Positions 10,971 to 38,546 of a DNA stretch of 64,000 nucleotides are shown piece by piece; within the stretch, counting starts at the first letter, position 1, and the number at the start of each line of letters is the position of its first letter. The stretch spans positions 11,036,001-11,100,000 of the forward strand of contig OZ260666.1 of the NCBI GenBank assembly GCA_965285935.1, in the 5' to 3' direction. A program made the translations under genes and the position numbers. The stretch is from Ophelia neglecta. Lineage: Eukaryota. The notes beneath the pieces were generated by a model that worked only from the letters and a program-made list of their open reading frames with translations, made no database searches and was not told the origin of the DNA.

Positions 10971-12434
10971 AACCCCAAGTATATGTAGTAGATAGGCAGC
11001 ATTAGCTTCCATTAGACATATGATGAATATGACAATGCCGGTGGCGTGAAACATATAATCCATGTGTAATTGAGCACGTTCTGACAAATGCTACTGCTAC
11101 GTTTGAATACGGATGGCGTTTTCGACGCTATAAGCAATAAGCAATGAGACGAGTGATAACCTGTGTTTTAATTAATTATTGGATACTTACTGTAATCATA
11201 TTCAATCAATTTTCAATAATAAGTGTAACATCAATATGTATCTTTAGTCTACCTTAACTATCAACTAGTAAGCACCACTAGGGGAATACTATCCTTGTGC
11301 ATGTTGCATGAAGCAGTTTGGTCTATATGTGCAATTCCTACCTACGTCTTCTTAACAAACGACCTTTTCATGCGTTTTTGTTAATGTTGAAGTGAATATA
11401 TTCCATGACCTTTTTGGCCGCTTATATAATTGGCAGCTCCCATCATTTATTCTTGTCTTCTTCACGATCACGCGCACGTTCAGAGGTGGCTTTACAAGGC
11501 TAGAAACATAAGACAAATATCCATAAATTATACACATTTTCATTACCCTTCACGAGCTGGTAGGGGAACATATAATCATATATATTGAGGGCATGAGGCG
11601 AAAAAGAGCCACTTAGAAAAGCCTACAAATAATTTCAATCCCTGATGATTTCAAAATTCTTTTTTTCCGCTTAATGCAGGTTAAAACGAAATATAAAATG
11701 GTCGATAATACATTCATGAACGTAGAAGTATTATAAATAAAGAAAACATACAAAATGCGCTGTAGCCTAAAAGTATTTATTTCGAAAAGGAACCAATAAC
11801 CACGCGGTGATTCGACTCTCAATTGAGGCGCTAGAGCCACAGGCCCAATGACGCTAAAAAACGCCTCATTGATTGAACGATGATATACGTCAACCAGAAA
11901 CCCCGCCCATCCACCGCTCCCCCACGGAAAGTTATTAACGTTCGATGGTTTTAAGCGACGGGGCCGTTTCTGACCAAATCTGAAGACTCCATGCTGCTGG
12001 ATTTCATGCCCTAAGTCAAGAGTTTGGTATATTACTCGAGAACAATTACTCTGATTGATAAAATTAAACGAAATATTTCTCGGCAACAAACATTTCGTTA
12101 TTACTTGTTAAATAAAATGAACAAGTAGTGAAATACCCTACGACTCTTCACTAATTTGGTATTCAATTTTCGGTGAGACTAATGACATCAAATTGTGTAG
12201 TCTTGATTTTATAGAGAAAGTAATATAAAAAACTCACAGTTTCGCCATATAGGATCATGAAAAATAACAACCCAAAAACGAGAACTAGTTTGCTTACAAA
12301 TTCATGTATTTATGTATTGTTTAACGGAAATGAAGTCCTAGTTCGTACAAAATTATATCCGGTACGGTGTTAACAAAATATCTTATAAGATAAATGTACA
12401 ACGTAAAATCATCACTCACATGCCTTAATCTTAC

Positions 12435-12807
12435 CTTGCTTTATGTCTTTGTTCACAGTAGCATATATAGGCTGTGATCGCCAGGACAAGGCAAAATTTG
12501 ACTATCCTGGAAAATAANNNNNNNNNNNNNNNNNNNNNNNNNNNNNNNNNNNNNNNNNNNNNNNNNNNNNNNNNNNNNNNNNNNNNNNNNNNNNNNNNNN
12601 NNNNNNNNNNNNNNNNNNNNNNNNNNNNNNNNNNNNNNNNNNNNNNNNNCGCAGGCTAGCTGGAAAGTTCGATATATATTCAGCAAAGCAAGTATGAACT
12701 CGCCTGATTTAGGCTATTCCTTTGTTCTTCTTCTGTTCCCCTGGTGACAATAGCAGAAGTCGGTATTGGACGGCATGGCCCGCTGTCCATTTCGGTACTT
12801 GGCGAAG
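12435..12807 (-). pseudogene. Two degenerate cytoplasmic-tail exon copies related to gene A (12704-12807; 12435-12506)
   Basis: 12704-12807 has the same ctttgtag| acceptor and aligns with exon 20397-20489 (Tyr replaced by Ser, GC donor). 12435-12506 encodes SQPIYATVNKDIKQ with a gtaaga donor but has a TAG in its second codon if read in phase 1. Confidence 0.5.
12518..12649. other. Assembly gap (N run)
   Basis: Run of N. Confidence 1.
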
Positions 12808-13078
12808 CTACAAAGGAACAATCGATTATCGATATCTGGTGCCGTTTGCATTTACGAAGGTAAAGAAAGGGGGTGGATACCTGGCAGACAAAGCCAAATC
12901 AGTGATCTATATTAGATAATTAGATCTTAAAGTGAGCATTCTGTATTCAATAATGAAATGAACTACAGGCAAAATGCATGACATTGTACAAATACAAGTA
13001 AGTTGAAATGTGTTTTGCATGAAAAAAGTAAATCCATCTAACATGAAATTTAAAGTATATACAAAAGTGTCTGTATGT

Positions 13079-13132
13079 CTGTGTTTGTGTGTGTGTGCGT
13101 GCGTTTGTGTGTAGGTGTGTGTGTGTGTGTGT
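13079..13132 (+). repeat. Imperfect (GT)n microsatellite
   Basis: gtgtttgtgtgtgtgtgcgtgcgtttgtgtgtaggtgtgtgtgtgtgtgt. Confidence 0.9.
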
Positions 13133-14414
13133 TTACGTTTTGCCCTTGGAGAGTAACTTCCGAATTGACTAAAGTTTAACTATGAAAGAAGATGCACTAA
13201 CCATATGTAAGGTTGTCCTCGCTCATATGTTCGTTAAAAGTGGCGTCAATTGGCAACCACTTGTTTGACGGTTTGAACTCGCCGGTCAATTTGGGACATG
13301 ATAGTGCTGAAATATGTACTAAAGTCAGTACAGCATACATAATTGATACATTGATTTCAAAAAGGGTCCTTTTGTATTCTGTTTCCGGGCTGAAGACTGA
13401 TTTTTGCACGCATGTAGCATGTATATCAGTTACTCGTGATTTGATAAAACGTCGTGTTGTAATTCAATACTATGACAGAGACACGTTGTAAACAATCTAA
13501 TGTCGTCTAAATGAACTATGTGGTGCCGATCTGTAAGTGCCATGAATGCTGGTTTTAACAGCAATTCAGTGCAGACAGAGGAGGCAAGGCGGGTGGTTAT
13601 TGAGGTAAGATATTTTTCAATAAGTCAGGACTTGTGTTTTAGGAAATTGCGGTGGTATTCTTCAGGATTGGATTTAAATGGGCATTTTACTTCGGGTATA
13701 GGCAGGTCCAAAACACATAAACTTTGTTCCGCAAATATGAATCTAGTTGATAAATAAAGACAACTTTAAGCGGTTGCCTTGCATTTTTTTTTGCGTTTAT
13801 TTTTACATTCTATGTTAGTGACTTCACTACATTAGGAGTAGTCAACTAAGACACACCATTTGCAATGTGAAATCACTGTTTACGATCAGAAATGCATAAA
13901 TTCCGGGAAAATAGAATAATATGTTGCGAAGCCGACCATGGTTGAAAATGTGTGAATACACGATCAATGAAATCATATATGATGTTCGATCAATGCGTTA
14001 CTGACGCATATTCGACATATGCAACTCCCACTGACACATTTAGTTCTAAACGAGAAATAATCCTGGGACTTACGTGGGTACCAAAGACTGATCATCCCAA
14101 AAATCCAATTTGAATGCCCAGCAGGGCTTGAACAAATAATAGTTGGAAATAACCCGGCAAATCGGTCAGAATTGTTAACGAGTCGTCAGCTGCCGGACCC
14201 AAATCATATTATTTCCATCTATATTTAATTCAATTCAGTGTTAACTGCTATGATCATATATCTTAATCCGATACGTAGGTCTATTGTGGCTGTTCCCAGA
14301 CTGTTATTCAGCCTGTTATATCTCCCTGTATTAATCCGTATTTGAAGCTCTTGACTCAGAACTATCACACATTTCAGAGCTGGAGTTAATTGTATAAATG
14401 GTAATCAAAGGAAC

Positions 14415-15943
14415 ATTTCGAGCATTTTGTGAATTAAAAAAGATAAATATGCGTATTACTATAACCGACTTTATCAGTATCTAAACAAAAACAACATTCT
14501 ATATGCCTCCCAATATGGATTCAGGAAAAACCATGGCACAGAACATGCCTCAATAGAGATTTTGGAACATATCACATATAACAAATAAACTAAATAATAA
14601 GGAATATGTATCCTCTATTTTCATTGATTTGACTAAAGCATTTGACAGCCTTGTTCACACAATTCTCCTGTTCAAACTTCGAAACTATGGCATTCGTGGT
14701 ATTGCTTATGCCATCATGGAAAGTTATCTCACGAAAAGATGTCAGTTTGTTCGCTTTAATTATTTTGACTCTAGTCACACTGCTGTATCATGTGGAGTTC
14801 CACAAGGTTCGATTCTTGGGCCATTGTTCTTTTTAATTTTTATTAATGACTTCATCAACTCACATAAATTATCTAAAACCATCCTATTTGCCGATGATAC
14901 AAGTTTAATGCTACATGATTGTAATTATTCTAGTCTTATTCTGAACATGAACACTGAAATACAGAATGCAAACTTATGGATGCGGTCAAATAAACTTGCT
15001 ATGAATGTTACAAAAACAAAGTATATTATATTCGAAAATGCACATAAAAATTTGCCTCTTAATTCCTTAGATGTAAAACTTAATGGACAACCTCTCGAAA
15101 AAGTCCAGACCTTCAAATTTCAAGGCACTCTTTTTGACCAGCGTCTGGATTGGAAAGCCAACATAAGTGAGAAATGCAGGAAAATCTCACAAATTATAGG
15201 CATATTGAGTAATTTAAAATACTTTCTTCCAAAAGATTCACTGAAAGTAATATATACTGCTCTTGTCCAACCTCACCTAATGTATGGAATTGGTGTCTGG
15301 TATAACCCTACTAACAGAACAACATGTAATAGATTATTTCTCCTTCAGAAAAAAACTATGAGAATTATTACAAAATCACAATTCTTGGCCCACACGGAAC
15401 CCTTATTCAAAAAACTTAATATCCTCATGCTTCACGATATTTTTATAAATCGCTGCCTAAAGCTCTACTTCTCTTTTCTCGATAATCTGTTTATCTCTCA
15501 GATTTGTTAGACTATCGCGAGATTACCCCCGTAGTCATAACACCAGATCTATAGATGTAATCGAACAGAATCATATTCGAACAAATTATCTTAAGCAATG
15601 TTTATGGTATAAACTTTTTATTGCTACGCACCTAATTCATTATGATTTCAAGCACCCGCTGACCTCCAACACAAATTTTAAGAAACTGCTCTTGTGCCGG
15701 TATTCTAGTTCATGTAACGTCGTTAATTGTATTCATGCAATTTTATTCATGGCTAGAACATTCTGTAAAGTTCAACTTTTATGTTATCGTACTTCACTTA
15801 ATTTGTATCCACATGCAATCAACATGTTATTAAATTGTAAATTTAATTGTATTGTGCTGCCACCATCCAGGGAGGCCAGATGTACACAGCCTCGGCCATA
15901 ATCTGGCGACCTTAATAAAATTATTATAATCAATTCAATCAAA
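14415..15943 (+). mobile_element. 5'-truncated, frameshifted CR1-group (Crack-like) LINE
   Basis: ORF 14629..15510 has KAFD, GVPQGSILGPL, FADDT, YTALVQPHLMYG and HTEPLFKKLNIL. Upstream remnant QYGFRKNHGTEHA. 3' AATAAA plus short repeat tail near 15914-15943. Confidence 0.88.
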
Positions 15944-16002
15944 CTAAAGTTACTGAAAGGTGCAAAACGAACAGGTGACCTCATTACAGAGGTTCACTGT
16001 AC

Positions 16003-19000
16003 ATTTATTCTTCAGTCCAGCGGAAGGTAGATGCGGAGGGTAGTCACATATGTTCGTATACATATTATCTAACCAACGATGTTCTAATAAAATGGGTGGG
16101 AAGAACCTTACGAATTTGGAAATTGTTGAAATTATTTCTTATTTGTAAATGTTTCCTAATGAGAAAATATCCCGATAGTGTTAGAGATATGTTTTTGAGT
16201 TGATATGTGCATATAATAAACTGGATACCTTCGATTTTTAACTAATAATACCATGATACCAAAAACAGTCAATTAAAATACATTCACAGTGCAAAACAAG
16301 AAAAGAAAACTACTTACACTTATCCAGATTGGTAACATTTAGTTCTTCATAGGGGTCGGGGTAAATGGGAAGCTGACGTTTTGGCCTAGGGCCCAATGCG
16401 ACGCATGAAGATACTTGAATGACAAAAGTAGCTGATGCTATATAAACCATTGTAATCACAAAATGATAACAAACATCGACATTTATTGGTATATAAATAC
16501 AACCAATGCGTTCAAGTAAGAAATATTTTGATGAACAAAACCAAAGTAAAATGTGCAAATGAAAACAAAGTCATCTTAAAGCGACGAATTTCAAGAAACC
16601 GAAGAAAGAAGCCTGCATGAAACGTCGGTCGCTCACTTTTCGCTCGGTTCGTGTTTCTGCCCTCGACTTCTTTAGGGTGGGTTGCCATGATGGCATTTGG
16701 AAAATCTGGAACATTTAAAAATTTGATATATCCACTTTGGAGCAAAAGTTGCAAGTGCTTATTCTATGCTAAAGCAACTGATATCGTGCTTTTGGCCAGG
16801 TGTTCCGATTTGTCCTTGATTGATTCTGCTTGCTTTTGTTATTTAAACATTTGAGTTTGAATAACATGATCGGCAACGAGTGATCTCCTCCTTTCGGGGG
16901 CTTAAGGTGGTGTGCTACATAACGTGTTAAATATTACATGGTAATATAACATACTAAAAAGTCTATCGTATGGTACTTTAGGTCCTGTATGGGTGTGACT
17001 CTGCTAGATCATGTCTCCGGGCGAACCCACAAGAGATGGGCGATGGTGTAAGCCGACCCCCCCCCCCCCCCACCTCCTTCGTTGGGCAGACAAGCCCATT
17101 TAATAGCATGTGTCTCACTCTATGCACGTATAGGCCTGACGTCTAGAGGGTACTGGCTATCACTGTTTGACCTCGTTTTAACTGCCCCTTTGTTGTTGGG
17201 ATTTCCCAAAATCAAATATTACAATAAAGTAGATCTATTCGGTTTCTTTTTGCTGAACATTGCTTTTTTCAGCACCATATCTATTGAATTTGTAGCGACC
17301 TATAGGGTCTTTCGTACCTAAAGTTTATATATTTCTGCATATTGGCACATTCTTTATAATGGGCGACCATACTGGGGTCGCCTTCACATCATCTTTGCCG
17401 TCGAAGTGTCAGCGCCAATGAGGCCAAAGCTAAGTGTTTCACGGTTAACAGTTCAGATGGGCTTATAGATTTACTGGGCGATATTAAAATCATTAAATTC
17501 CTGGCTAGTGAAAAGTTCCATCAAATTTATATTTTCTTCCACTTTTCCGTGTAGAAAACTGTCACAAAGGTATCACCGAAATATTATGTCTATCTTGTAA
17601 TGCGCTGATACCTTCGAAATAGAAACTTGCTATCGAAAAACACTTTATTATCGGAGTCATTATAGAACGTGTCCAGTCTAGGCATACCAGACGGAATAAT
17701 TTGATATTTTGATATTTTACTATTATATGGAACTTATTACAATGCCAACATTTTTTATCCACGTACCACAATATGATAAGGGAACACACCTGCATAGTCT
17801 GCAAAACCCATTGCAAAAGATGATGGCCACATGGACATGACCATTCATAATTAACATCGCAATAGGTCTAAATTGTGTTTTCAACTACTAACAATAACAG
17901 CAACAGAGCATATCCCAAAAAAATGATAGTTAATTTTAATCGTAGCATACAATAACTACGCATACAAGACGTTTGAGGTGAAGAATATTTCCGTCTTAAT
18001 TTATTTAACATATACTTGCTCCTATAAAAAGGCCCATTGCTTTGTTAACTTACCATCTTACAGATTGGATAAGAAAAAAAATGATATATACATAAATACA
18101 TCATTGTTAAACACTGGCGCGTTTGTTTTGGGTTCTGACCGCATCATGGAAAACTAGAGACTACTTCTCATTGTAAGTGATATCAATTTTAACTTTCATC
18201 TTTTATTATTAGCATTTCAAGTTTATTTAGTGTTTGGAAGCTGGAGATTGGTGTATTGATGGGTGTGGGGCTGTGGCTGCCGCTTTCTGGTGATTTCGAA
18301 CAGGTTATATAAATGGACTATTCTGGATTAATGATTAATGATTTGGCTATGTGATTTGGATTTGTCTGCTGGGAATCCACACCCGTTTTCTTTTCTTGCG
18401 GTTACATCGATTTATTAAACAAATTTTGCTTCACCAACATGAAACGTTTTCTTCCTAACCTTCATCATTTTTGTGTTTTCTTTATGCATTCAACAATTTG
18501 CAAGACTCTGTCACAGCCTGTTTTACCATGGAATTCCATTAGTAACGCAGCTCAATCACATGTTAGGATTTGTTTTCTCAACTAATCATGTCAAAATGTT
18601 AACAACAATATCGCTAATAAGTTCATTTTATGGCAATTGGTTTAAGTTCAGTCCTAAAAGTATGTCAACCATTTACTGTCAATTTTACTAGCTAGTTCGT
18701 GGCTCGGCAAACAATTTATTTGGAATCAACTACCCCATATTATCATGACAAGGATTTTATTCCAACTTTTAACAGAAAATGCAAGTAAGTATGTTTGTTT
18801 TAAATTTCTGGACTAGACCATGTGAGCTGAATTTGTTTTAGATAGAGGTGGGAATCTGGCATTCATGGTAAAGTATTCAACTGCTCTTTTTATAAGCCCC
18901 TGATCTCAGGCAACCTGTGTACCTTATTTATTATGAAATATGGATTGATGGGTATAAAAAAATACACCTTACCGTCTAATGGACATGGCATAGGCACTAC

Positions 19001-22000
19001 AGTGTCATTTGCAATGTTTTCCGCGGTGCAAACATTGCCGTATTCATCATTTGAGTCACAAACAGTCTCTGGGTGGCCACAACCGTTGCGATGAATTGCT
19101 TTGTCATCTCTGGATATTTCGCTGACTGGTAATTAAATATGAGCAAAGGTAGTTAAGGAGTAGGTAGTGAAAAAATTCATGTCAAAGTTGCATACTGTCA
19201 ATCACTTTTAATTTATCTATAACGTTATTTGTGTATTGAAACAGAGTAAAACACATTGACATGCTTAAGGGACCTCTATAATGTATATTTCAATTAATAA
19301 CGAACAGCGATTTAGTTGATGTCAAGAACTAAATTCAATCTGGCGGACATTGTAGGGATTTAATAATATATCAAGTTATCTTGGTGAGGGATGTTATGCG
19401 AGTAGAAACATAATTTTTGCAGATAAAAGCCCTCACGAGTTACGTATCAAATAGCACAATTAAGTGTACTTATATATCAGAATATACTGCATGCCTACGA
19501 AAAATGGTTAATGTTTAGAATATATGTAAAATATATAAACGTTAATGATCTGCAAGAAAATGATAGTTTATTTAAAAAAAACTTTACAACTTGTCCATGC
19601 GATGAAAAAAGTAACAAAATCGTTACGGTCAATGCAGGCCCGCGTACATGTCTTTTTCATTTTATCCACTGCATAGATCGGTAGTTCTTGGCCAGGTCCG
19701 TTGCTGCCACCTGACGAGGATGAAATTGGTTTGGGTCGTGTAAAGGGATAAAGAGTCATGAGAATCATGTGTTATTCATCATAAGCGTGAGGGATACGGT
19801 ATCAAAACAGATTCGAACCATAAAATCGAATAATTTCCGTACAAACTTATATTGATTATCTATTACTCTTGAAATATTGGCCATCGAAACAACGGTTGTT
19901 TCCTTGATGATATTGTCGATTTACAAAAACGAAATTTTAAATATTTTTTTCGCCAAGTTTCTCCTTACTATTGAAGTTAATTGGACGAATAATAATAAAT
20001 TGAATATTGAAGCTATATGCATGTTCGAATATAGGACAATCTCCTATCTTATGTTTTTCTCCTTGGGGCGAAATAGCTACGGCATGCAGTAATCTGCATT
20101 CTAGATATAATAACTAATTACTATTCGTTTCGTAAACACACAGCCTGTCTGGGAACGGTGAATGATATAAAGCAAGTATTTGACTGAAAAGTTTAAAACT
20201 AATTGCTCGAATTGGAGGTTATAGAACCAGGAACAAAAAGGAAACAAAGGTCGTCATTGTATTTTATGGTCGGGTAACATTTGAATATTTATCTACAAGT
20301 GAAATGCCACACTCTCAAGTTTCGCAATATAATTTGCACACATCGTCCTCGAAATACTTTTCCCATAGCAGGTAGTGTAAAAAAACGGCGACTCACATAT
20401 CTCAGACTTGCCCTTTTTCTTCTTATTTATAGTTGCATATATAGGCAATTCTAGGCGAGGTCGGCTAGCTATGCTGGTAGTTGAAACCGCTACAAAGGTA
20501 AAACATGATGGCAATTTAATCATCAATGAGCTAATCTAGATGTTTCAAATAAGTATCCATTTGAATAACAGTTTTTTAGGCCTGCCTTCGCCAAGCAAGG
20601 TACAGGATATCACTTTATATTATATGTGCTTTGTTGTATTCAAAAGGTTCCCTAACATACAGTATACAATTAGTCTATATTTGGAGAAATGTGAATGACG
20701 TCTTTTGCCAAGTGAGGCATTAAATTATTAATATTGAACCGAAAATATACATTAATCAAAACTATTTTAAAGTATAAATATACAAAACATAAAATTCGAG
20801 CCAAGCACACACGATGGCTTCCGATTCCTGCACGTGGTAATATTTAAATTGTTTACCATTGTTAACACTCAATGACCCTGAAGAACAGGCCTCCTGTCGC
20901 ACGCATGAAATGTCTTCATAATAAGGTTCAGTTATCTTGACAGAAAGAGCTTCGGGAACAGAAACATTGAGATTGTTTCACTTGTTTTTTTCTTGGAATA
21001 TTAAAAACGAATAACAAGAAATTGATGTGGTGCTGTTAAGGCATGTAATGTGAAGGTATTCTAATTGAGCACTCATAAACCCTAATATCAAATACATATA
21101 GTTTAATCGGGGACAAAACATGGCACTTCCGGAAGTCATCTAATAGCAGTGAATATGACAATACTTGCGACGTCCATACTGCCATCCGCTTCTGTGGCTG
21201 ACGGTATATTTTATAGTTATCCAACAGGTTATATGTTCGTTCAGGTTTCGCAAAGACCCACATTACTTACTATCCGATGGAGCCATGTCCATTGCTGGGT
21301 CAAACATTATATTATCCACCATAACCGTGTCGTCACCAGAGGAGAAGTCTTGTAACACAAGTACACGGACGATTGAAATTTCTTTGTTATATTGTATCAC
21401 CTTCGAGAGTTAATATAAAGCAAAACGTTGTACTAATGTTATTTGATTCATAATATCGATAGCTACTATTTTCATAGAATGCACTATTGAAATACCTACC
21501 ATCCGATGACAAGGACTCGTCCATTTCGGGGTCAAACACGACGTTTTCCACCAAGAACGTTTCATTGTCTTCCTCCTCAGCATCAATAATATTATCTTGC
21601 ATGGGAATACTAGATATTGTCTGGATTTTGGTAGTTGCATATTTCTTTCCATCTGAAGTTTTACTTGTAGGTTATTATACTACAAACATATATTATAATA
21701 ACGATAGAAATTAATCATCAAGACAATTGATTTAGGGTGATAATTTGTAAAAAATCTACAGCTAAAGGAATTGCTTGTCTAGCCTCTAAATTGCTGTATT
21801 TTTTTACCCTTGGGATGTAAAGAGATGTGAATGACTTACGGACTACTCGAACCAGAATGCTCATCGAGATTACAGTCAAGGCCAAAAGAACAACTATTGT
21901 AGTCACAAACCCTATTACAAGTTCGATGGAAGTTCCTGTAAATAGTGCATTAGAAAAAAAATTATAAAATAAGGTCAAAACCGTGTAGATAAACTATGAT

Positions 22001-25000
22001 TCAACTTCTCTTTTATACAAGCAAGATAGAGAATTTTCATACAAAAAATTATTTAGGGACAGTCATTGCAATAAAACATTACGGAAGAACGCTGTTAAAA
22101 AATTTGAGTCATTTGTTTTGCCGCATATACACCAATCGGTGCTTGTGTTTTGAAATGTTGACATTTAGAAATTATAATAAAAATATAAAAAAATAAAAAA
22201 GACAGTTAGAATAAGCGAAGCGATATATAAATTCTTCCCAAAACCATATATTGTGTAAAATCAGAACGTTGAAACTGATTTGCAACACACATAGAGTAAA
22301 CACGTGAACGTGGAGAAATCGACGTGCACGACTTGCAATGCACGGTACTCCTCCTCAAAGTAGTGCGCCGACCCCAACATCTATAATGTGTAGAGGCTCG
22401 TAAAGGGATTCATACGCAGCTTCTTTACCATGACGGTTACTCTTCTATGGTAAAATTATAGATGAGGGTATCGTCTAGGCCGAAAGGTTGAATCGCGACA
22501 ATATTAGTGCTATCCAGCCGTGCTCGTCATATTTGCAGGTCGTTTATGAGCTTTATGATTGCGCTGGCAGTCATTTCGGACAAAGTTTTGTTTCGACGAC
22601 TCTTCTTCAAAGTTGCGCAACCTACTCTACGGTAGGACGAGCCATTATATGCTTTCAACACAGCACTCACTTCTGATTTAAATGGGGCCCGAATGTGTGC
22701 AGTTATGATTACGAAATTATGACTAATTTGCTGAATGGAGGAAATGTGCACATGGTCAGGAAATTCTCTTTCGCCTTTGGGTATATATTTTTGTTTAAAA
22801 TCTCATTCTTTAGAAAGTATTTTCGTGGCATCAATCAGCAGTTTTGGAACCGAGAGAGAACATTGACAGTCCAAATAGTTGTTCTTATTTTGATTTAAGT
22901 TTCTTTCAAGTCTGTGTGACAAAAGCAGATGATTACAAATTACATTTGGTCAACATGCTCTCCTTGATAGCAATTTTTCGATATCCCCAACATTCCCCAA
23001 TATTAATCATCAACATCTCAAATGTATTCCATCCTGGGGCTTACTTCCTCTCCTTCCCACGTTGCCCACTGACTCGTTTTGTATGGTGCTCTTTATACGC
23101 TTCGTGGTAAACTGTTTACTGCTTGCCTTGGCAAGTGGTATCAATTGTCCTTTCTTTACTGACGTTAGCTGACGGTTGTGTGATGATTTCGAACTAAAAA
23201 TATTAATAGACTATACCTCATTAAAGATTTTGCTTTGTCTGTGGGGTACGTACTCAGATTTATTTTATGCGGCCTAACTGTGGTGATGACGCCCAGGCGG
23301 ATAAATATATTTGTGTACGTTGAAGTAAGCAATGTCTACTACCGAAGCAAATATATAATGAGGCTAGCTCTCATGCCGAAACTGATATACTGAGGCTGGT
23401 AAAAAAAAAACGCTGGCTCTTATTTCGAGGCTAGTAAACAGAAAAGCTGGCTCTAATGCCGAAGCTAGTAAACAGGGAGACTGGCTCTTATAACGAGGAT
23501 AGCAAACAATGAGACTGGCTCTTATACCGAGGCCAAGAATCAAAGAGGCTGGGTCCTATACCAATGCTAGTAAACATGGAGCCTGGGCCTTAAACCGAGG
23601 CTAGTAAACAAGGATACTGGCTCTTATACCTAGCCTAGTAAACAAGCAGGCTTGCTTAATGTACCGAGATGAGTAAAAAAAAAGGAGGGTGGCTTTGCAT
23701 TCTGCCGCTTATTGTATATGTGCGCGAAAGTAAGCTATCAGTGTGAGCCCAACAAAGCCTGATCTGCTCGACTGCAAGTGTGAGTTGTTTATAACCGCAT
23801 CTTACTTATGATCCACTTACATGCAATTACTGTGCATTGCCGTCCAAAATAAGATATTATTATACCAGCGGTTTAAACATCGCAGCCATAGTATCCAGCT
23901 TAACAGAACCTTAATCATTATAAATGCCATTATGCAAGATATAAATGCATCTGTGTATTATTGAAGTCTTACTCTTAACATTATTTGTAGAAAGATTGTG
24001 TTTATAACTACCTTACCTAGATATTACCTTTTGAAAACGCCTGCATTGTCCCTGACGAGTAGTCCAATGGTGTTGAAACCAAACCTGGGAAATAAGTATG
24101 GATAATCACAAGCGCAAAACTGCTAATAAAATAATTTAAGATCCACCGCTAGTAAATAAGCAGCTATGACCGAACAACTGTGGTCGAATAACCATAATTA
24201 GCGACTACTCCTCTGCAGGCAGGGTTTATATCCGGTGGCATTCCAAGACATTAACAGTGGATGGTCAATGAACCAATATACGAAAACACTCATATACTAG
24301 ATATTTTGTGTTTTCACCAGAGTATCGTAAAAACAATTACAAATTATTTAACACACAGTTAAAAGGATTTTGCTTACCTGACCTCACTTTATTTGTCTAG
24401 TATATGCATGTATATGTATGTGCATGTATATGTAGGTTTAAAAGGCAAATAATTAAATCTACCAAGATCAACTGCTTCACTTGGCTCAGACTCATAATTT
24501 GAACCTTCCTCGCGTCCCCGACAGGAGTAGGTTGATAACGGACCTTCCTCCAAAGATAAGTCGATTGATGATTCAAAACTAGCATTTGTGATATCTGTTC
24601 CATCACGCTGCCAGATGTAGGTCATATTTGGACGATAGATTTCCGGCAGAGAAGTCAAGTTGACTACACAGGTCAAACCATAGTCTTGAACTATAATGGA
24701 GGCTGAAGTTGGCTGACCTGCATTGTAAACAAATAGAAATTATATTAACCCCTTGGTATCTTTTGTCGAGGTTGGAATGCTTAAAGAGACTTAGAAAAGT
24801 ACTTAGTTATTTTATCTGAAATGTGTTCATCTTAGATTTTTTCTTCCATTGATGAAAATAACAATACCTAGGGTTAACTGATACGACATTTTTTTACATT
24901 TTTGACACTTGATATCAGTTTATTATCCTTCAATTCTGATTAGTTCTGACTTGGTCAAACATTTTCACTATGCAATTACGCACGTGGTTGTGTGTATTAT

Positions 25001-26126
25001 ATAAGGTTTTAGCTTACCCCATACAAAGATGATGCCTGAATTATTATAGTTGTTCCCAAAGCAGGAATATGTTCCGGCGTCGTCAAGCGTGACATTCGTC
25101 AAAGTGATATCCGCCACAGAATAATTACTCCAGCCAATTGTGAACCGGTTCAATTTTAGGTATTTTTTTGCCGGAAATATTTCTGTCACCTTTACATTAA
25201 ATACAAGTGTTTGATTATTGTCAAAACAGGTAACATATCGTTTGTTGTCACCACCTGGTAAATACCAGGAAAATGTGGCGTTGTCACCCTCGTAAACCGC
25301 TGTGATTTGAGGACCTGAGAGAGAATATTAATAAACCCGAGTTATATCAAATTGGTTTTAGGTATGTTGATAACAGAACAACCATTTCTAGAGACAAAGT
25401 AAATTGTACTGAAGGCCAGGCATAAACTAAAGGTTACGACCATATTTCGAATGCATGTTATAAATACACGCAGTGCTTAGTATCAGGACTGAATTCTTAG
25501 TTAACTGTTATGGCTATACCAAATAGTTATATTTTCCTCCTACCTCGAGCCTTGCCCCCCTAGCCCTCACCTAGTGACACATTCACATTAATGTGCCTTT
25601 GTTTAATAATTATTTGATTTGAACTTATGTGAAACGTTTGATAGTACTGTTCCGTTTTCTTCTGCCAAATCTGTGTACAAGAGCAGAAAGGCATGGCTCA
25701 CACAAAAATCTATTAAAATTACTTCATAATTCAATGATGTGTTCATAGTTTAAGGTGGACACGAACTCCTCCCTGCCTATGCATTATGATTGCTCCAATA
25801 ACTTGTAATAACGGTAATTGTTTTTAATACATTCGTCTATAGAAACTATAGTACTACTTCATTTTTAGGGCGTCACAAGTTTGTTTATACTAGCCAAGCG
25901 GTTTCGGAACGTGTAGCTGCACATCCATAAGCAACATGTTTGGAAGAACGCAGCCCCCCCCCCCCCAAGAGCTCCGTGTTTTGTGTACTGTGTATTTCAT
26001 TCAACAAAACCAAGTACATTACTTACTGTCTGCAGCCAGTGCCAATAAACAGACAATTTGCAAAACACAAATGACATACAATGTAGAATTTGGCATCAGC
26101 AGATCCATTCCTCTGTAGAACCGCAT
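16003..26126 (-). CDS. Gene A: single-pass Ig-superfamily receptor (signal - atypical V-set - Ig2 - stalk - TM - long Tyr-motif tail). Predicted exons 26027-26126, 25018-25314, 24463-24717, 24028-24084, 21840-21935, 21500-21652, 21271-21348, 20857-20949, 20397-20489, 19648-19710, 18973-19125, 16318-16413, 16003-16068; terminal exon not resolved
   Basis: All listed exons have AG/GT boundaries and phase-1 junctions, and join without stops. Leader MRFYRG...VICVLQIVCLLALAAD; V domain GDNATFSW...YVTC...ITLTNVTLDDAGTYSC; Ig2 LTC...SLP...MTYIW...YSCRGRE; TM LVIGFVTTIVVLLALTVISMSILV. Ecto and TM exons are high confidence; individual tail exons are moderate. Confidence 0.78.
21840..21935 (-). CDS. Gene A exon: transmembrane helix (96 nt)
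   Basis: tttacag| ... |gtaagt; about 24 hydrophobic residues followed by R. Confidence 0.85.
23361..23695 (+). repeat. 34-bp minisatellite, about 9-10 diverged copies (gene A intron)
   Basis: Unit approximately gaggctagtaaacagaaaagctggctcttatacc, repeated in tandem. Confidence 0.85.
24463..24717 (-). CDS. Gene A exon: second Ig-like domain (255 nt)
   Basis: aatgcag|; canonical C..W..YxC; homologous to 63083-63334. Confidence 0.88.
25018..25314 (-). CDS. Gene A exon: atypical V-set Ig domain (297 nt)
   Basis: ctctcag| ... TGG G|gtaagc; DxGxYxC F-strand motif; Trp at the B-strand Cys position. Confidence 0.9.
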
Positions 26127-27549
26127 CCTGGACCTACATAGAAAAAAAACAGTACTTAACTTAGCATACACACGCAAGCACATCCAAACCCACTACAGGG
26201 GTTGTATTAAATGCGAATGTTGGCGCGAAAGACCAAAATAGTACTTAAACTACTTGATTTAAAAATTGGAATTATCGGCTAGTTCGGCAATATTGGCGTG
26301 TATACATTTGGCAATTTGAGAATTTCAGCAGCAGGTCACAGGTGCAGGGGATGGATGGAATGAAACAACTTAAGTGGCAAAATAATGCCAATGTCGGGCG
26401 CTTTTGTGATTAGTAGAAGCTGTGTTGAGATGTTGGTAGTATATAAGCACCATCACTCTTACGCAGGGAGTGAGAGAGACTTTGCTCAACTATAAGACGG
26501 AATCCTAGTCCTTGTGTAGATGTGATGCTCCTGTATCGTAGTCTCAGAGCGCAGGATATCCACTTGCACGTTTTGCAATATCGTTGGTTTGAGCCCACAT
26601 CAAATCGACAATTATTTGCCTCTTCAGGCTTGGGTTGTGCTACATTAAAAATGCACCAACAATTTTCCCCGCATTATAAATATCCATCAGTAGATAGGCC
26701 TACGCACATTATAAGGCTATTCGTCTATCTATTTAAAGTAGATGTGATAGCCAGTGTGACAATTGGGGGGGGGGGGGAGGGGGAGGGGTGCATTAGCGTG
26801 GGTAAAATAATAAGTACGCCCTCTAACTACACTATATTAAAACACATCATACTTTTAGCTTCAACATATGGATCTCACACTGGCTTGTAGTATGGATAGT
26901 GACCCTTCTTAAATAGTAAATGACCTGGTTTAGTGTACAAGAAGTCACTAGCTAGCTAGCCTGTAGAGCTGCTTATACTCAGGCACATACTATATAATAA
27001 CATGATTCCCGGTATGACTCGGTTGTCTCTATCGTAGTGCCAAACTAGTCTACAAATCCGATTTTACAATAACGAGTATTATGATTTTCGCGCCAACTTT
27101 CGCTTTCGAGTTAAACACAAAGCCCCTACAGGTCATTTCAAGGATATAGTAAGCATAGAGCATTTAGGCCGATATTTATTTCAAGACCCTATCAAAGCTT
27201 TATTTTGCAGCGCTTGGAAGGTTTTAATTGATGAAACTCCAAAATGCTGATAGTGTAATATACTTAGAAGTAAAATACACCAGTTCCTACTCTTAGTTTA
27301 ACTCAATAAATGACTGTGTTCATAAAATATGGGCTGCCATATGGCCCTACTGCACCTCATTTTTCAGTATCCGGTATTTATATTCGCGACAGACGGCAGC
27401 TAGCGGACACTGCGTGGTTTTGACAGGTTTTTCCTTGATAAGCCGAGGTAAATATTCATCAGACGTAACTACATCGTGCACTCAGAGGTGTCATCAGTAA
27501 AACATATACAACGAACCGTGCAATTATCGGATTTGTAAGCGAGGTGACG

Positions 27550-30802: not shown

Positions 30803-33390
30803 TTATTATTATTATTATGTTTTATTAACCTCCGCTTTCCGAAGAGCATATAAGTAGTACATGTAATGAAAATACAGGCAGTCAAAATTCAAACTGGAAA
30901 ACCATAGGAAAAAAAGGTATGTACAAAAATAAATGAATAAGTAGATTACAGCAGCTTTCACACAAGATAAACAGTATTGCTTTTATTTGACCACCCCTCC
31001 GGTAGTTTTACTGGTATTTTGGTTTATATGGGGTGCAGGACGTCGACACATTTTGTTTTTACATTTGGTTTGATATTATCATATAAGCATTTACACAGCG
31101 GTGCAGTGAACTCGCCTCTGGTACATGGCAGAAAGGACAGTTAGGACGGTCTGACGATCCCCAGGTAGGTAGGTGTCCCAATGGAGCATTCTCAGGCACG
31201 GGTTTAAATAGCCCTCTGTGACTATCATTCGTCGTTGTATTTCGGACCTCTCATCGCTTAAAGCTTCGCACTGTAGGAGAAAGTGGGCGAGGCTGTCTGT
31301 TCCCGAGCGGCACAGCGGACATTCAGAGATATGAGGTGATACATACCTCCCAAAGTGGGTATATAGAGCTGACGACTTAGTAATGAACTTCAAGATTGTT
31401 TGTACCCCTCTGTTGGCCTTCATGGTCTTTGCAGACTTCCACCACTCGAACTGCCCATACTTATTGAACAATAATCGGTAGATGTCCAGGGACGGAGACA
31501 TTACACACAGGAGTCTCCAGTCGTCTTCTAGTAATTGTTTTGTAACATTTTGGACATGTAGTTTCCATTGTCTCTTATGGGTCGCCTGACCTTTGTGGAG
31601 CCACGACATGAGTGTTTCTGTAAGACGGAACTTGTAGAATGTGTCCAGCAGGACACCTAGAGGACTATCTGGAGGAATCAATAGACCATGCTCATGTCTG
31701 GTTAATGCTCGAGTTGCTAGTTTCCTGTAAACACTGTTCGCAGGCAAATCCATAAGGTCTCTAAACAATTTGAGTCTTTGGAGGTCGAGGTAGGATTGGA
31801 CTGTTCTCCAGCCCAGTGTTGCCAACACAGCTGCATTGCTGACGTTATTAGAGAGGTTCTGGATGAGACGCGCACTACGACGATGCTCAGCTTCAAAAAG
31901 CTCCATCAGGTTAGGGCTTATCTTTAGCAAGTCGAGGCCATAAAGAAAACATGGCACTACAATTATCCAGTACAACTTAGACAGTGTTTTGGTATTATAA
32001 AGTCCGTTTGCTGTACCAATACTTATTATGGAGTTCAATTTCTGTCTTGCCTTCGCTTTTCTTAGCTGAAGTAGAGCCTCCAGCTCATCGGGTCGGTTTG
32101 CCAGAGGAATTCCAAGGTGAGTAATTCCATCTGTAAGGGGGATTAGACCCTTGCCCATGTATAACCGCTCATCTCTCCTGTCATTTGTATTCCCGTATTT
32201 TAACATTTCACACTTGGACACATTAAAAGATAGTCGCCATAATTTACAGTACTGGTGGACGAGTTCCAGTAAGATTGACATTTGACGACGATAAGATGTG
32301 ATTAACGACAGGTCATATGCAAAAACAGGGCATGAACTGTTTATATTATATACATGACAGCCAAGGTTCACTTTGGTTATGTATTCTATCAGATCGTTGT
32401 AATACAGCATAAAGAGTAACATCGAGAGCGTCCCTCCCTGGTGGAGTCCCTGGCGGACTTTAAACCAATCTGATAGTTCGCTCCCAACGCGCACTGCGCT
32501 GTAAAACTCTTTGTACCAGTGCCGTAATACTCGATAGGTTTTCCCTTGGATGCCATAGTTGAAGAGCTTATAGAATAGACCCTCAGTCCATATGACATCG
32601 AATGCTTTCCTACAGTCTAACAGCGTTACATACACCTGGTCATTTCCGTGGAGGTGTTCGTGAACTGTTTGTCGTAGTAGCAGTGTTGATTGACGGCTGG
32701 AGCAGTTAGGTTGTCCCGCCCCCTGCAGCTGATTTATGAGTTCGTGCTGTGTTGACCAAGACTCTATCCTCTTGTAATAAATGCCTTCAAGTATTTTTGC
32801 CATTGTCGGTAGGAGGCTAATTTTTCTATAATTGTCTTTAAGACGGGGATCTTTCCCCCCACCTTTAAATAGCGGTATTTCGATCGCGCGTCTGAAGTCA
32901 CTAGGCACATATTCAATGGTTACCACTGCGTTGTATAGTCTCGTAAGATTATAGATTAGGGTTCTTCCACCGTACTTAAGGTTCTCGGCCACCAGCCCAT
33001 CGAAACCTCCTGCTTTACCCAATTTCGCACTGTTCACGGTAGCCTCGACTTCAGTCTCTGTTATTGGCTCATCTAGGACACAGTCAGTTTTGGAGAGTGA
33101 CAATATGTCATTTTCGTGTACCTTTTCTTCAATAATTTCTTTGAACTCATTGTCATATTCTGGTTCATATTTTGGGGTGACTAGGTTAGTAAAATACTTT
33201 CTCCAATCTTCGCGGATATCGTGGATGTCAACAAGGAGATTTCCATCTTCTAGAATGATATTGACCTGTGCCCCGATTTGGCTTTTTCTCTTGTTACTAA
33301 TTTGACGCCAGTAGTAATTCTGATCGATTTCGCCGCTACTCATTATATCTTCTTGATCCTTCTCTTCCTTTTCATGTTCAGCTTGATGAC
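30803..33390 (-). mobile_element. 5'-truncated RTE/RTEX-like LINE (RT plus C-terminal Cys/His finger), probably inactive
   Basis: 750-aa ORF 31091..33343 has NYRKISLL, LDCRKAFD, QGGTLS, FAYD (catalytic FADD mutated) and CPLC...HFLLQC. AATAAA plus (TAA)n tail at 30803-30826. Clade assignment is inference. Confidence 0.88.
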
Positions 33391-34376: not shown

Positions 34377-37300
34377 TTTAAACATATTTATTTACATAAT
34401 TTGGATCTTACAGAAGCCTGGGGCTTAGAAGGTAATTTCCAAATAAAGCATTAGCACAATATTTACAAATATGCATGAGATAAAAGATGATGAGATGAGA
34501 TGAAATGTAATGGAAAGGTACAATACTCGTAGTTTAGAGTCATTGGACAAGATTTGTCTACAAAGTTGATGAATTCAACATAAATAGATAGAGAGTTTTA
34601 CAATTCAGTGAGTAAGAGAACAAGTATACTAAATATAAAAATATAAAAGAGTAAAAGTAAAATTGTGGATGAAAGGCATGGTTTTCATAATGCAACAAAA
34701 ATAGAAGTAAATGTAGGATAGTCAGATGGTCAGGGCCAAGGCGCATGTCTCCATCACCGCACAACAAGAATGGATGAGTGCGGTTGAGACATACTAAGCT
34801 AGCCAGGGACAACTGTAAAATATAAATTATAAGAGCCTGTCATCGGTCACCGTTCGCAAAATTTAACAAAAATGTGAATCTGTAAAGTATAGTTAGATCG
34901 TTAGGAAACAAATCTTTGTGACCTTATAATATACTGGTCAACAATATAAGATAATTCAAGAGACATGTCATCATCATCACAGTTAAGTATGGTAGCCATG
35001 CGGTCATCAGGCAAAATAGAATAGAGGTTTAGAAAGTCGACTAAGTGATTACAGAGGGACGCGTACAATGGACAATATAAAATGTAGTGGGAAGGTGTTT
35101 CGTTTTCCAAGCCACATAGACAAATGGGAGAAGTAATGCAATGATTAAGATAAAGGTGGTTATTAAGGCAACTACAAAAGAGTCTGCACTGTGCAAGAAA
35201 TATCTGAGATATTCGCGATCCCATTAAAAAGTATTTCGGGGGTTTCATGGGGCAGTTTCGGTTAAGCTGTTTGAATAAATTTTTATTCGTGCATTGGCGA
35301 GATTCTATGGAAAGGGTATTCCACTCGGTAATTGACTTATAATAGAAAGAAGATTTGTACTTTTGAGTTCTACATTTTGGAAGGGCTAAAAGATTGTCAG
35401 ACCGACTATGTGTGCTATAGGGATGCGGAGTAGTTACTGGTAAATTTTCCCACAGTTGGATAGGTGTGATTTTGTTGTATATATCAAATAGTTTTAGAAG
35501 CATCGCCACCTTGCGGCGTGTCTCTAGAGTTTCCCATCCTACTTCGAGTAGAAGCTGGCGGTGTGAAGTCCCTCGCCTTGCACCGCAAACAAGACGAGCT
35601 GCCTCAAGGTTTATATTTTCTAATATGTTGGACAATTCCATAGACGAGTGGTCGAACAGAACAGAGCCATATTCCAGAAGAGGTCTAATATAGGTTTTAT
35701 AAGCTATATCAAGGCCCTTCCTAGACACTTTATATTTCACACTTTTCAAAATATTCAGTCTTCGGGTAGCCTTTTTACTAACATTAAGAATGTGCTCTTC
35801 CCAAGATAAAGTATTGGTGAGAATAACTCATAGGAGAGAGTAAGACGACGTGTTTATACAAGGAGTGTCGCCGAGTGACAAATCCAAAACAAAAGAGGCG
35901 CGCTTCCTACTAAATAGGATACATCGTGTTTTTGGCACACTAATTGAAACCTTCCATTTATTACACCAATTATTAATAAGAGAGAGGTCGTTGTTAACTG
36001 AAAATATTGCAGGGGCTATATTTTTTGAGGAAAACCTATGGAATAAGGAGGTATCATCAGCAAAAAAAAAGATAGAGCTGGAAATTTCACGCACAATGTC
36101 ATTTATATAGATTAGGAAAAGCAGGGGCCCTAGAACAGAGCCTTGCGGAACTCCAGCGGGAATAAATTTGTATGAGGAGGCGCCGCCAGGTAGAACAACC
36201 CGCTGGCGTCTGTCAGTCAGGTAGTCGGCAACCCACGACAGAGTGTCCCCATTAATGCCACAATGTTTCATCTTATGAATGAGACCCTTATGCCAAACCT
36301 TATCAAATGCCTTAGTAAAGTCGATAAAGACTCCTATGACTTCGTCTCCATAGTCGAGTGCTTTGTGTATTTGTTCACAAATTTCGATTAACTGGTTTAC
36401 AGCAGAATCATTCGGGATAAACCCAGATTGGTTAGGAACAAGAATGTCATGTGCCTTAAGGTGGCTAAATAAATGGTCAAACATTAGTCGTTCGAAAACT
36501 TTAGATAGGCAGGGTAGTAGTGATATCGGGCGATAGTTATTGCAGTCATGCACACTGTTCTTTTTGTGAAGAGGAATAACATCGGCAGATTTCCAACATG
36601 TAGGAAATTTACACTGAGATAAAGAAATATTAAATAATGCTGCCAAAGGTTCCGACAGGGGTGCGGCCGCCTCCTTGAGGAGAAAATTGCCTATTTTATC
36701 CTCCCCAGTAGCCTTAGAAGGCTGTAAACTTTTCAGAACACCATACACCTCGACGGCGGAAATTACTTTAATTCCAATAGATGATGTAATGGGAGGGGCA
36801 TCGTTGTCTGCAGGCAGATGCTCGTCCGACCCGGCCAATGATGATTGGCCAACAAAAAATTCATTAAATATTTGGGCTTTGTGGGAGGGATCGGTTATTA
36901 CATCGGCATTCTGATGCAAGGGAGCTGACGTCGGAGAAGAACGTGTATTAAGAGTTGTTTTCATCAGTCTCCTCCAGCTAGGAGAGGAAATTTCATTAGC
37001 AGAAAACATTAAATCGATTGATTTGTCATGCTTTGCTTTGACATCACGCACTAGGTAAGTAACATGGTTTCTCGCCAAATTATACCGACGAAGGTGATCA
37101 GAACTAACGTGTTTAACCTTATGTAAACGGTCACGTTTCATCATCTCCCGTCTTATAGTTGAGTTAAACCATGGCTTGTCGTGGGGTCGGATAGTAACTG
37201 TGCGGTGAGGAAAACAATGCTCACAAATTTGTAAGAGAAGGTTTGTAAAATTATTGGTTACGTCATCAATATCCGCAAGAGACAATATCAAGTCCCAAGG

Positions 37301-38546
37301 AGCAGTATATATTAGATCTCTGTAGAGGTCACGATTTCCACTTTTAAAGTCCCAAACCTTTCTCTTAAAACACGGACGTTTTGCAATGGCCTTAAACATT
37401 TCAAGATATATAGGACAGTGGTCGCAATTATCCACCAGACGAGGAAGTGTCCCTTTTGAAACCACGTGATTAGAATCGTTAATAAAAATATGGTCTAGGC
37501 AAGCTTCAGAATGAGAGTCACTGCGTGTGACAACGCCAATTAATTGTGAGAAACCGCGCTGCCTGAAAAAAGCATTAACGAGTCGACCGTCTCTATTAGT
37601 ATCATCAGTTGAACACCACTGATGATTTTTTGCATTCGTGTCGCCAATGAAAACCATAATGTTGTGGCTTTCAGAGGAAGATTCAATTATTTCATTTATG
37701 CCACTTAGAAAATGAAGGCAGTCCTCGTTTGGAGGCCGATAATAAAAGCACAGTAGCACGGAGAAGTTACTTGCTTTTACACTTAGACATATATTTGCAA
37801 TCAAAGCTGATTCTACAGCGGCATTGTGTCTCCCATTGAATGATTCTGATAAATAAACAGCAAGGCCGCCACCTATACCCTCTCGGTCCTTACGAATAGG
37901 AGACAGGTAGCCGGGAAGTATTATAGAGGAACTAGGGGTAGTAACTTTGAGCCAAGTTTCAGATAATGAAATTACATCGTGTTGATAATATGACGCAAAG
38001 GCGCACAAGTAATCGTATTTTGAAAGATTTGGCGACCCACCTACAATAGCCGCGGTCTGTAAACTACGTATATTCATGTAGGATACTTTAAAGCCTACAT
38101 TTCGAGCGGGCCCAGGATTAAGTTCAATGTCACCGCACGAGCGGAGCACATTGGGTGCTACATATAAAGTGAACAGGAATGAAGGGAATATTATAAACCA
38201 GAACAAGGCGTCGCTCTTTAATTTCGATCTGTTTAAAGTAAATAGTCCGATCGCAGCCCGATATTGGTCAGTGCAAATCACGGTGAGCGATACGGCGGAG
38301 AAAAACGAATGATATGTGACTTAATGTTGTTTGAATAGAGACCAGCTGCATGAGAACAGAGCAAATTGGTCCAATGTCATAACAATGCAGACAAAACAGT
38401 ATAGTGTTAGTATCAGGACATACATGTACTTGACGCGTGCCAGTACAAACGTTAAATGTACAACTAAACAATGAATGAGTGATATAGGGTGAAATGAACA
38501 TGAAGCAAAACAATTGAAGTATGGTTGTGTGAGGAAGAAGAAAACG
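34377..38546 (-). mobile_element. CR1-group LINE, ORF2 (2A-like peptide, APE endonuclease, RT, Zn finger) with one break near 35830; no ORF1; 14-bp TSD
   Basis: ORFs 35828..38281 (SETWL, YRPP, GDTN, CLDHI, CDH, KAFD, VPQGSVLGP, FADD) and 34901..35749. TSD aaatctattcttgg at 34363-34376 and 38547-38560. 3' end aataaatatgtttaaa. Confidence 0.93.

Follow-up and report, generated by a model that had tools for sequence, protein, structure and literature searches.

Gene A is an Ig-like surface receptor of invertebrate type whose inner tail is a row of small frame-neutral exons with one docking motif each. It lies on the minus strand of the window, a 64,000-nt stretch of DNA from Ophelia neglecta (contig OZ260666.1, positions 11,036,001 to 11,100,000), and all the features described below are on that strand, at window coordinates. 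Sequence comparison indicates that gene A is one of roughly ten Ig-superfamily receptor genes, which form a lineage-specific cluster on one chromosome.

Exon organization of gene A

The putative first coding exon (26027..26126), recognized by reading the sequence, encodes the signal peptide MRFYRGMDLL...LLALAAD and ends in a phase-1 donor. It is followed by an Ig V-like exon of 297 nt (25018..25314), which scores 28.0 bits against the Pfam ig domain PF00047 (cut-off 21.8), and by a second Ig-like exon of 255 nt (24463..24717) with a weak Ig_2 match. The transmembrane (TM) exon (21840..21935, 96 nt) encodes ELVIGFVTTIVVLLALTVISMSILVRVV and is homologous to the TM exon of the paralogue L004. The features of a type I membrane receptor can thus be read from the sequence: a hydrophobic N-terminus, a 28-residue hydrophobic exon and then the basic stop-transfer HGKKY. 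Phase 1 is used throughout the gene, by the signal-peptide donor and at both ends of the two Ig-like exons, the TM exon and the tail exons.

A duplicate of the gene A region, 93-98% identical, lies 150 kb off and represents a young segmental duplication. The first ATG of the signal-peptide exon is retained in it, and the second ATG is missing there. The V-like exon differs from its duplicate by nine substitutions, nearly all amino-acid-changing when the two translations are read, and by a 6-nt indel; the second Ig-like exon differs by two substitutions. Set against the tail, the changes in the V-like exon fit a diversifying ectodomain carried on a conserved tail.

The tail exons

After the TM exon come eight open exons bounded by AG and GT, of 153, 78, 93, 93, 63, 153, 96 and 66 nt (E1 to E8). 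The eight peptides and exons listed in an earlier note on this DNA were all recovered on the minus strand, each within an open phase-1 AG...GT pair of exactly the length given there. The mutual duplicates that it had seen were also found: E1 resembles E2, and E4, E5 and the first half of E7 resemble one another. Searches were made with one exon at a time, and no domain was returned by a Pfam search of every tail exon. Three kinds of module can be distinguished. The N module is a [D/E]-rich stretch followed by T-x-[L/M]-V-[E/D]-N-x-x-[F/Y]-D-P (core ΦxNxx[F/Y]DP); the P module reads R-P-R-x-E-L-P-I-Y-A-x-[V/I]-[N/D]-K plus a basic run (core ELPIYAx[V/I]); and the Y module reads [N/D]-P-Y-E-E-[I/L].

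E1 (21500..21652, 153 nt) is the N1 module, in which the stop-transfer GKKY... precedes EDNETFLVENVVFDPEMD; identical 153-nt boundaries are present in L003, L005 and L004. The only match to E1 in a full protein-library search was P0001, a 647-aa repeat protein with an unrelated layout, which we judged to be a spurious hit. Neither library holds an annotated or assembled protein with E1, and a word search of proteins for the E1 open frame, in a length window that excludes full-length proteins, gave no candidate. E2 (21271..21348, 78 nt, DDTVMVDNIMFDPAMD) is the N2 module, whose 78-nt form recurs in L012, L007 and L004. E3 (20857..20949, 93 nt) is an open phase-1 AG..GT frame encoding EPYYEDI. 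Its matches in a search of the own genome are two recent copies only, and a locus-level comparison places a homologue at the equivalent relative position of L004 (48 nt, phase 1-1, REPYYEELT).

E4 (20397..20489, 93 nt, RPRLELPIYATINKKKK) and E5 (19648..19710, 63 nt, GQELPIYAVDKMKK) are the P1 and P2 modules, both with homologues in the paralogues. E4 differs from its duplicate by four synonymous and no non-synonymous changes. The donor of E5 is ambiguous on reading the sequence, either gtacgc at 19648 (63 nt) or gtaacg at 19627 (84 nt), both in phase 1. E6 (18973..19125, 153 nt) is a decayed N3 module, with TAENIAND as its core and a new DEYGNV. The own-genome search found two recent copies only, and E6 is homologous to the N3 exons of L004 (E=0.001), with the length and position of N3 exons. 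E7 (16318..16413, 96 nt, RPKRQLPIYPDPYEEL) is the Y module; it has paralogue homologues, and its length is exactly 96 nt in each of the four copies that were compared.

E8 (16003..16068, 66 nt, NMYTNI) is an open AG..GT frame and an unsupported candidate exon, with nothing in its favour other than the recent duplicate. Its splice signals are the weakest of the set (Py 0.55, donor gtacag, 3/6), the own-genome search gave no homologue except that duplicate, and it could not be placed at locus level either. Further downstream, a candidate last exon (12430..12506) opens with GA-TAG after the acceptor ttattttccag, which ends at 12507. It contains a decayed P module, PIYATVNKDIKQGK, at 12471-12430 with the donor gtaaga, preceded by an in-frame TAG. 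The junction into this exon would give TGA after E4, E5, E7 or E8, and otherwise TAG one codon on. A run of N (12518-12649) adjoins it.

Module order and history of the family

The tail of gene A reads as the module string N-N-(E3)-P-P-N-Y. Homologous tail exons follow one another in unchanged order in eight diverged sisters of gene A, which lie on its chromosome; the order N-N-P-P-N-Y is kept in the diverged paralogues (L003-L012), with L003 as a naturally shorter member (N-P-N-Y). N-type exons have 60 genomic matches, 57 of them on the chromosome of gene A, where all 24 matches of P-type exons also lie. The modules align cleanly. The N positions have traits of their own across genes: N1 is 147-153 nt long with a basic start, N2 usually has 78 nt and Phe, and N3 has 141-156 nt and Tyr. 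Since these traits are common to the genes, the exon triplication is older than the gene duplications. Sequence relationships thus indicate that phase-1 exons were duplicated in tandem to form the tail before the family grew.

We propose that tandem exon duplication produced the order TM-N-N-P-P-N-Y ahead of gene multiplication, and that this ancestral tail would since have been edited gene by gene through exon gain, loss and decay. The edits in gene A would be the decay of the third N module (E6) and the reduction of the terminal P module to a stop-bearing remnant. The modules are presumably short and disordered, one per symmetric phase-1 mini-exon. Such a family makes visible how receptor tails may gain, lose and wear out docking sites as genes multiply.

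Motifs and proposed signalling

The earlier note had assigned inhibitory, adaptor and activating outputs to these exons, and those labels proved too confident. When all exon peptides were read, no canonical ITIM ([S/I/V/L]-x-Y-x-x-[I/V/L]) was present in the tail. Position -2 of the tail tyrosines is Pro in E4, E5, the first Tyr of E7 and the second of E3, Asp in E6 and the second Tyr of E7, and Asn in E8; the first Tyr of E3 has Glu at -2 and Asp at +3. No ITAM (Y-x-x-[L/I] x6-8 Y-x-x-[L/I]) lies inside any tail exon. The nearest string, YEEL-x10-YTNI, exists across the E7/E8 junction only and needs the unsupported E8, whose YxN is lost in the duplicate (98%) by an Asn to Ser change (YTSI). 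E1 and E2 have no tyrosine.

The motifs that are present are of other kinds. In 17 P exons the core is P-[I/V/L]-Y-[A/S/T]-x-[V/I], with Pro and Tyr invariant. This PIYAx[V/I] site, near the EPIYA code of bacterial effectors, is used many times over in the family, and a literature search with the motif strings had an EPIYA-effector paper as its sole match. PTB domains dock at NPxY, NxxY or NxxF, in the general form Φ-x-N-x-x-[Y/F], where position -5 is hydrophobic. This predicted docking pattern is present in the N exons (n=20): conservation of V34 and N36 is 90% or more, and nearly every exon has [F/Y] at +3 relative to the Asn.

We hypothesize that, once the fast-evolving V-like domain binds its ligand, Src-type kinases would phosphorylate the tyrosines of the P and Y modules. 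The resulting EPIYA-like and pYEE[I/L] sites could then recruit SH2 proteins such as Csk, SHP-type phosphatases and Src-family kinases, and the ΦxNxx[F/Y] modules could recruit PTB-type adaptors or sorting machinery. These partners are proposed from resemblance to published consensus motifs.

Whole tail or cassettes

The tail exons are several, short and frame-preserving on removal, as in known multi-exon spliced tails, and the claim that any subset can be skipped in frame holds. A few junctions had been expected to create a stop; none of the 36 possible exon-exon combinations does so at its junction codon. Phase 1-1 symmetry, however, needs no explanation by splicing, because tandem exon duplication requires symmetric phases and the whole gene is in phase 1. 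Compared with GTRAGT, donor sites reach 5.6-6.0 out of 6 in the N1, P1 and Y classes. Mostly strong splice sites, together with the conserved module order, favour largely constitutive use of the exons, and it is from just these two features that we infer constitutive inclusion. We think it probable that the tail, built by exon duplication, is in most cases spliced in complete and serves as a docking scaffold with multiple sites. Occasional skipping of the weaker exons E2, E3, E5 and E8 would be plausible and secondary.

It is tempting to go further and regard the exons as true cassettes, whose regulated combinatorial skipping would couple one ectodomain to many signalling tails. The full set of symmetric exons and stop-free junctions would allow this, and the weaker donors of E3 (gtaaac), E5 (gtacgc) and E8 (gtacag) would suit it. 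So would the 78-nt N2 exons, the class of E2, which keep weak, purine-rich ...aag acceptors and gtcagt donors across paralogues. Paralogues that lack some modules, such as L003, suggest that shortened tails are viable, and there are precedents in PECAM-1 exons 10-16 (PMC2132561), shrimp Dscam (PMC6851185) and Botryllus FcoR (PMC12582321). However, exon duplication in an all-phase-1 gene already accounts for the symmetry, and the conserved order and strong sites of N1, P1, N3 and Y fit constitutive exons. We therefore consider regulated skipping unlikely. It is likewise doubtful that a single gene gives rise to dozens of tails with different sets of PTB-type, EPIYA-like and pYEE[I/L]/YxN sites, multiplied by about ten paralogues with diversifying V-like domains. 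Cassette use, if true, would diversify receptors on the intracellular side as invertebrate immunity does at the ectodomain, and in an undescribed receptor family.

Coding status of the tail exons

Whether included as a whole or in part, the tail could belong to a decaying recent duplicate, its exons being relics no longer expressed or translated as a unit. Gene A does sit within the young segmental duplication, its third N motif has decayed and an in-frame TAG stands ahead of the terminal P module; the motif loss in E6 and this stop suggest that the gene A copy may be drifting. Against such decay, every tail frame is open, and the tail exons differ from the duplicate by nine synonymous and eight non-synonymous changes (pN/pS 0.26, P=0.006). 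Neither copy has an indel in the 891 exonic nt, and 18 of 18 splice dinucleotides are retained, whereas the introns contain 72 gap positions. We thus find it very unlikely that the tail is a relic. The informative test against the duplicate is this synonymous/non-synonymous split, rather than the exon and intron substitution rates (2.2% vs 3.4%, P=0.08), which are suggestive only.

By itself the exon pattern is within chance, because 367 comparable open phase-1 AG..GT candidates (multiples of 3, 45-240 nt) occur in the 15.8 kb that follow the TM exon. Gene A predicts where the boundaries of 40 homologous exon matches in eight diverged paralogue loci should lie: AG and GT stand at precisely those positions in 18 matches, against 0.14 expected, and no more than 3 nt away in 27, against 1 expected. 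These boundary matches and the purifying selection indicate that E1 to E7 are real coding exons. That the tail exons are chance open frames in AT-rich, intron-like DNA is thus refuted for E1-E7 and has almost no probability left for the tail, although it still applies to E8.

Comparison with known systems

Spliced receptor tails of this kind are already known. The PECAM-1/CD31 tail consists of short exons 9-16, several with a single tyrosine; exons 10-16 undergo alternative splicing, which has functional consequences (PMC2132561). As in gene A, an Ig-superfamily receptor has its tail made from a series of short exons. The tyrosines of PECAM-1 are ITIM-type, whereas gene A has PIYAx[V/I], PYEE[I/L] and ΦxNxx[F/Y] motifs, in exons that are evident tandem duplicates, all in phase 1, and whose alternative splicing is hypothetical. 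No sequence relationship was found between the two tails, and none was expected.

In shrimp Dscam seven tail exons are optional, so that the number of tails, with SH2, SH3, ITAM and PDZ-type motifs, reaches 384 or more (PMC6851185). Like gene A, it is an invertebrate Ig-superfamily receptor with many small motif-bearing tail exons. Dscam, however, is one conserved gene whose ectodomain is huge, and some of its skips shift the frame; the gene A family comprises multiple clustered genes with two Ig domains, and in gene A all skips are frame-neutral. In Botryllus, alternative splicing exchanges ITIM and hemITAM in two FcoR genes (PMC12582321). FcoR and fester are, like the gene A family, clustered and fast-evolving invertebrate Ig-superfamily receptors with tyrosine-motif tails, but the swaps there occur via intron retention and new stop codons, and involve a canonical ITIM or hemITAM, neither of which is found in gene A.

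Csk and SHP2 are bound by phosphorylated EPIYA sites, and depletion of EPxYAxV in mammalian proteomes has been reported (PMC3593179). The effectors CagA and BepD-F and mammalian Pragmin resemble gene A in their repeated, duplicated P-I-Y-A-x-V/I segments within a region that is disordered, or in gene A presumed to be. The gene A family has E-L-P-I-Y-A, in which one more residue separates Glu from Pro; its binding is putative, and it lies in a host receptor tail instead of an injected effector.

Together, these features describe a clustered invertebrate family of immune-type receptors in which interchangeable exons with one motif each appear to encode the signalling capacity. Should transcripts reveal that exon choice is regulated, splice-tuned receptor output would be known from this family as well as from PECAM-1 and Dscam; if exon use is not regulated, the family would still illustrate cleanly how a receptor tail evolves through duplication of exons.

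Results

The window (G000:C9:11036001-11100000 of an assembly of 762 Mb) is AT-rich eukaryotic DNA with a GC content of about 0.36, in which several Ig-like exons and reverse-transcriptase frames of LINE type occur. Gene A, an Ig-superfamily receptor gene on its minus strand, comprises a putative signal-peptide exon whose end, in phase 1, is at 26027, a V-like Ig exon of 297 nt (25314-25018) above the Pfam ig threshold, a second Ig-like exon, Ig2 (24717-24463, 255 nt), a TM exon (21935-21840) and eight candidate tail exons, E1 to E8 (21652 down to 16003), with phase 1 at every exon boundary. All eight tail peptides quoted in the earlier note were found 3' of the TM exon, each within an AG...GT interval of exactly the length reported (153, 78, 93, 93, 63, 153, 96 and 66 nt) and with an open phase-1 frame, and that observation is therefore accurate as written. 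Three long LINE-like frames of reverse-transcriptase type, at 31091-33343, 35828-38281 (minus) and 41494-43167 (plus), are found on the upstream side of gene A and separate it from a neighbouring Ig/ankyrin gene. The E6-E7 intron holds a run of about 16 G on the minus strand (17055-17070) and, at about 18101-18349, a dispersed repeat some 230 bp long with many copies on several chromosomes at 74-83% identity. This repeat also matches 51-bp units arrayed in tandem at G000:C9:21982752-21983686.

The 15.8 kb downstream of the TM exon contain 367 open, phase-1, multiple-of-three AG...GT intervals of 45-240 nt. The exon pattern by itself is not beyond chance, and two kinds of relatives decide. The first is a segmental duplicate of the gene A region, about 150 kb distant and 93-98% identical. 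This young duplication (window 12000-27000 against G000:C9:10893000-10912999, minus strand, loci L001 and L002) spans at least 15 kb and copied the entire gene A. Over the TM exon and E1-E8, the two copies differ by 20 substitutions in 891 nt, with no indels and all splice dinucleotides intact; their introns differ by 145 substitutions and 72 gapped positions. The exonic changes include 9 synonymous and 8 non-synonymous ones (pN/pS 0.26, binomial P = 0.006). The V-like exon carries 9 substitutions, nearly all amino-acid-changing when the two translations are compared by eye, together with a deletion of 6 nt that keeps the frame. Only 2 changes fall in the Ig2 exon. A variable V-like exon beside a conserved tail is what is usually seen where a recognition domain diversifies and the signalling part stays fixed.

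The second kind are diverged sister genes. In six-frame genome searches, run one exon at a time, E1, E4 and E7 gave many weaker matches, nearly all on the same chromosome and mutually co-linear. Eight co-linear loci among L003-L012 were compared, giving 40 homologous exon matches. In 18 of them AG and GT coincide exactly with the phase-1 boundaries that gene A predicts (0.14 expected from shifted controls), and in 27 they stand within 3 nt of these (1 expected). E1, E2, E4, E5 and E7 are members of the family's exon set without ambiguity. E3 is matched in L004 by a phase 1-1 counterpart of 48 nt that encodes REPYYEELT and occupies the equivalent relative position; E6 aligns with the third N-type exon of that locus (E = 0.001) and has the length and position of the N3 class. 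E8 has no homologue in the genome except in the recent duplicate, and the weakest splice signals among the tail exons of gene A. The comparisons demonstrate for gene A a real, selected, multi-exon tail of duplicated one-motif modules.

Three module types recur: N, an acidic run followed by T-x-[L/M]-V-[E/D]-N-x-x-[F/Y]-D-P; P, R-P-R-x-E-L-P-I-Y-A-x-[V/I]-[N/D]-K followed by basic residues; and Y, [N/D]-P-Y-E-E-[I/L], whose first half is P-module-like. No tail exon matched a Pfam family, as expected of short linear motifs. Profile scans gave the order TM-N-N-P-P-N-Y in most loci, some with further P exons after Y; gene A reads N-N-E3-P-P-N(decayed)-Y-E8. Across genes, N1 exons are 147-153 nt long with a basic stop-transfer start, N2 exons usually 78 nt with Phe, and N3 exons 141-156 nt with Tyr. 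Such position-specific traits are common to several genes, so the exon duplications preceded the gene duplications. Later changes are specific to single genes: they left only N-P-N-Y in L003, and by decay turned the N3 core of gene A into TAENIAND. Within the receptor family, exons are born and die. A decayed P-type exon, its tyrosine lost, lies within a paralogue tail at L010:4413-4454 (LSDVLANRPRRELP).

Genome-wide, 57 of the 60 N-profile matches fall on gene A's chromosome, and all 24 P-profile matches lie in C9:10.8-13.3 Mb. The N motif (DDTTMVENVMFDPQMDG) also terminates long open frames of 150-400 codons, at L013:3111-3614 (minus) and L014:2611-3204 (G000:C9 3.16 and 3.33 Mb) and also at L015. 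These frames, rich in His/Cys/Arg/Gln or SRRPDQ repeats, belong to other clusters of the same chromosome (3.0-4.1, 5.8 and 6.7 Mb), and the N motif is thus used by more than one receptor family. A second gene in the window (63060-63639, minus, and 54000-62200) has paralogous Ig exons and a weak TM-like match (62178-62113). No N, P or Y module was found downstream of it within the window, so related ectodomains carry unrelated tails.

Discussion

Combinatorial splicing of the tail exons had been proposed in the earlier note. Skipping any subset does keep the frame, so the splicing potential is real; the few stop-creating junctions it mentioned do not exist, since every one of the 36 junction codons that the nine exons can form is a sense codon. 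Exon symmetry has simpler causes here: all of the gene is in phase 1, and exons must be symmetric to be duplicated in tandem. Inclusion by default is favoured by the conserved module order, by the near-consensus donors of three classes, N1, P1 and Y (5.6-6.0 of 6), and by the good pyrimidine tracts that N3 and Y exons have. Room for regulated skipping is left by the 78-nt N2 exons, whose weak acceptors (...caag, ...gaag) and gtcagt donors are conserved, and by E3, E5 and E8 of gene A, whose splice sites are weak.

At the 3' end, another gene-specific change left a P remnant (12471-12430). It has a homologous acceptor, which ends at 12507 and precedes GA-TAG; a splice to this site would terminate the protein at once. 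This exon, adjoined by a masked run (12518-12649), may be the real last exon of gene A.

We infer that the tail could act as a docking scaffold, its P, Y and N modules being predicted sites for partner proteins. PYEE[I/L] and YEDI are similar to the Src-family SH2 optimum, DEYGNV and YTNI are similar to the Grb2 YxN site, and the N modules fit Φ-x-N-x-x-[Y/F], a pattern of PTB-domain binding and of sorting signals. E1 and E2 carry Phe and so are not SH2 sites. The P sites are similar to EPIYA sites, with Glu displaced by one residue. Published EPIYA sites are substrates of Src-family kinases and ligands of Csk and SHP2, and a depletion of EPxYAxV from the proteomes of mammals has been described (PMC3593179). 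No tail exon of gene A contains a canonical ITIM or, within itself, an ITAM. An ITAM-like YEEL-x10-YTNI arises only across the E7/E8 junction (16318/16068; predicted codon TAT, Tyr, giving ...NLDK-Y-NMYTNI), if the unsupported E8 is spliced in, and is lacking in the duplicate, which reads NMYTSI there.

A full-library protein search with E1 matched only a repeat protein, judged unrelated, and a word search with its open frame, run in a length window and hence uninformative on full-length proteins, gave no candidates. The family's motif strings returned no description in a literature search. This is an undescribed receptor family, whose tail of motif exons is unusually regular, all-phase-1 and duplication-built, and its significance would be greater if cDNA revealed real combinatorial use. 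Splice-tuned receptor tails are already established: in PECAM-1 the tail derives from exons 9-16, of which 10-16 are alternatively spliced (PMC2132561), seven optional tail exons give at least 384 tails in shrimp Dscam (PMC6851185), and Botryllus FcoR genes exchange ITIM and hemITAM via splicing (PMC12582321). The gene A family has this design in common with PECAM-1, Dscam and FcoR, but not the sequences and motifs.
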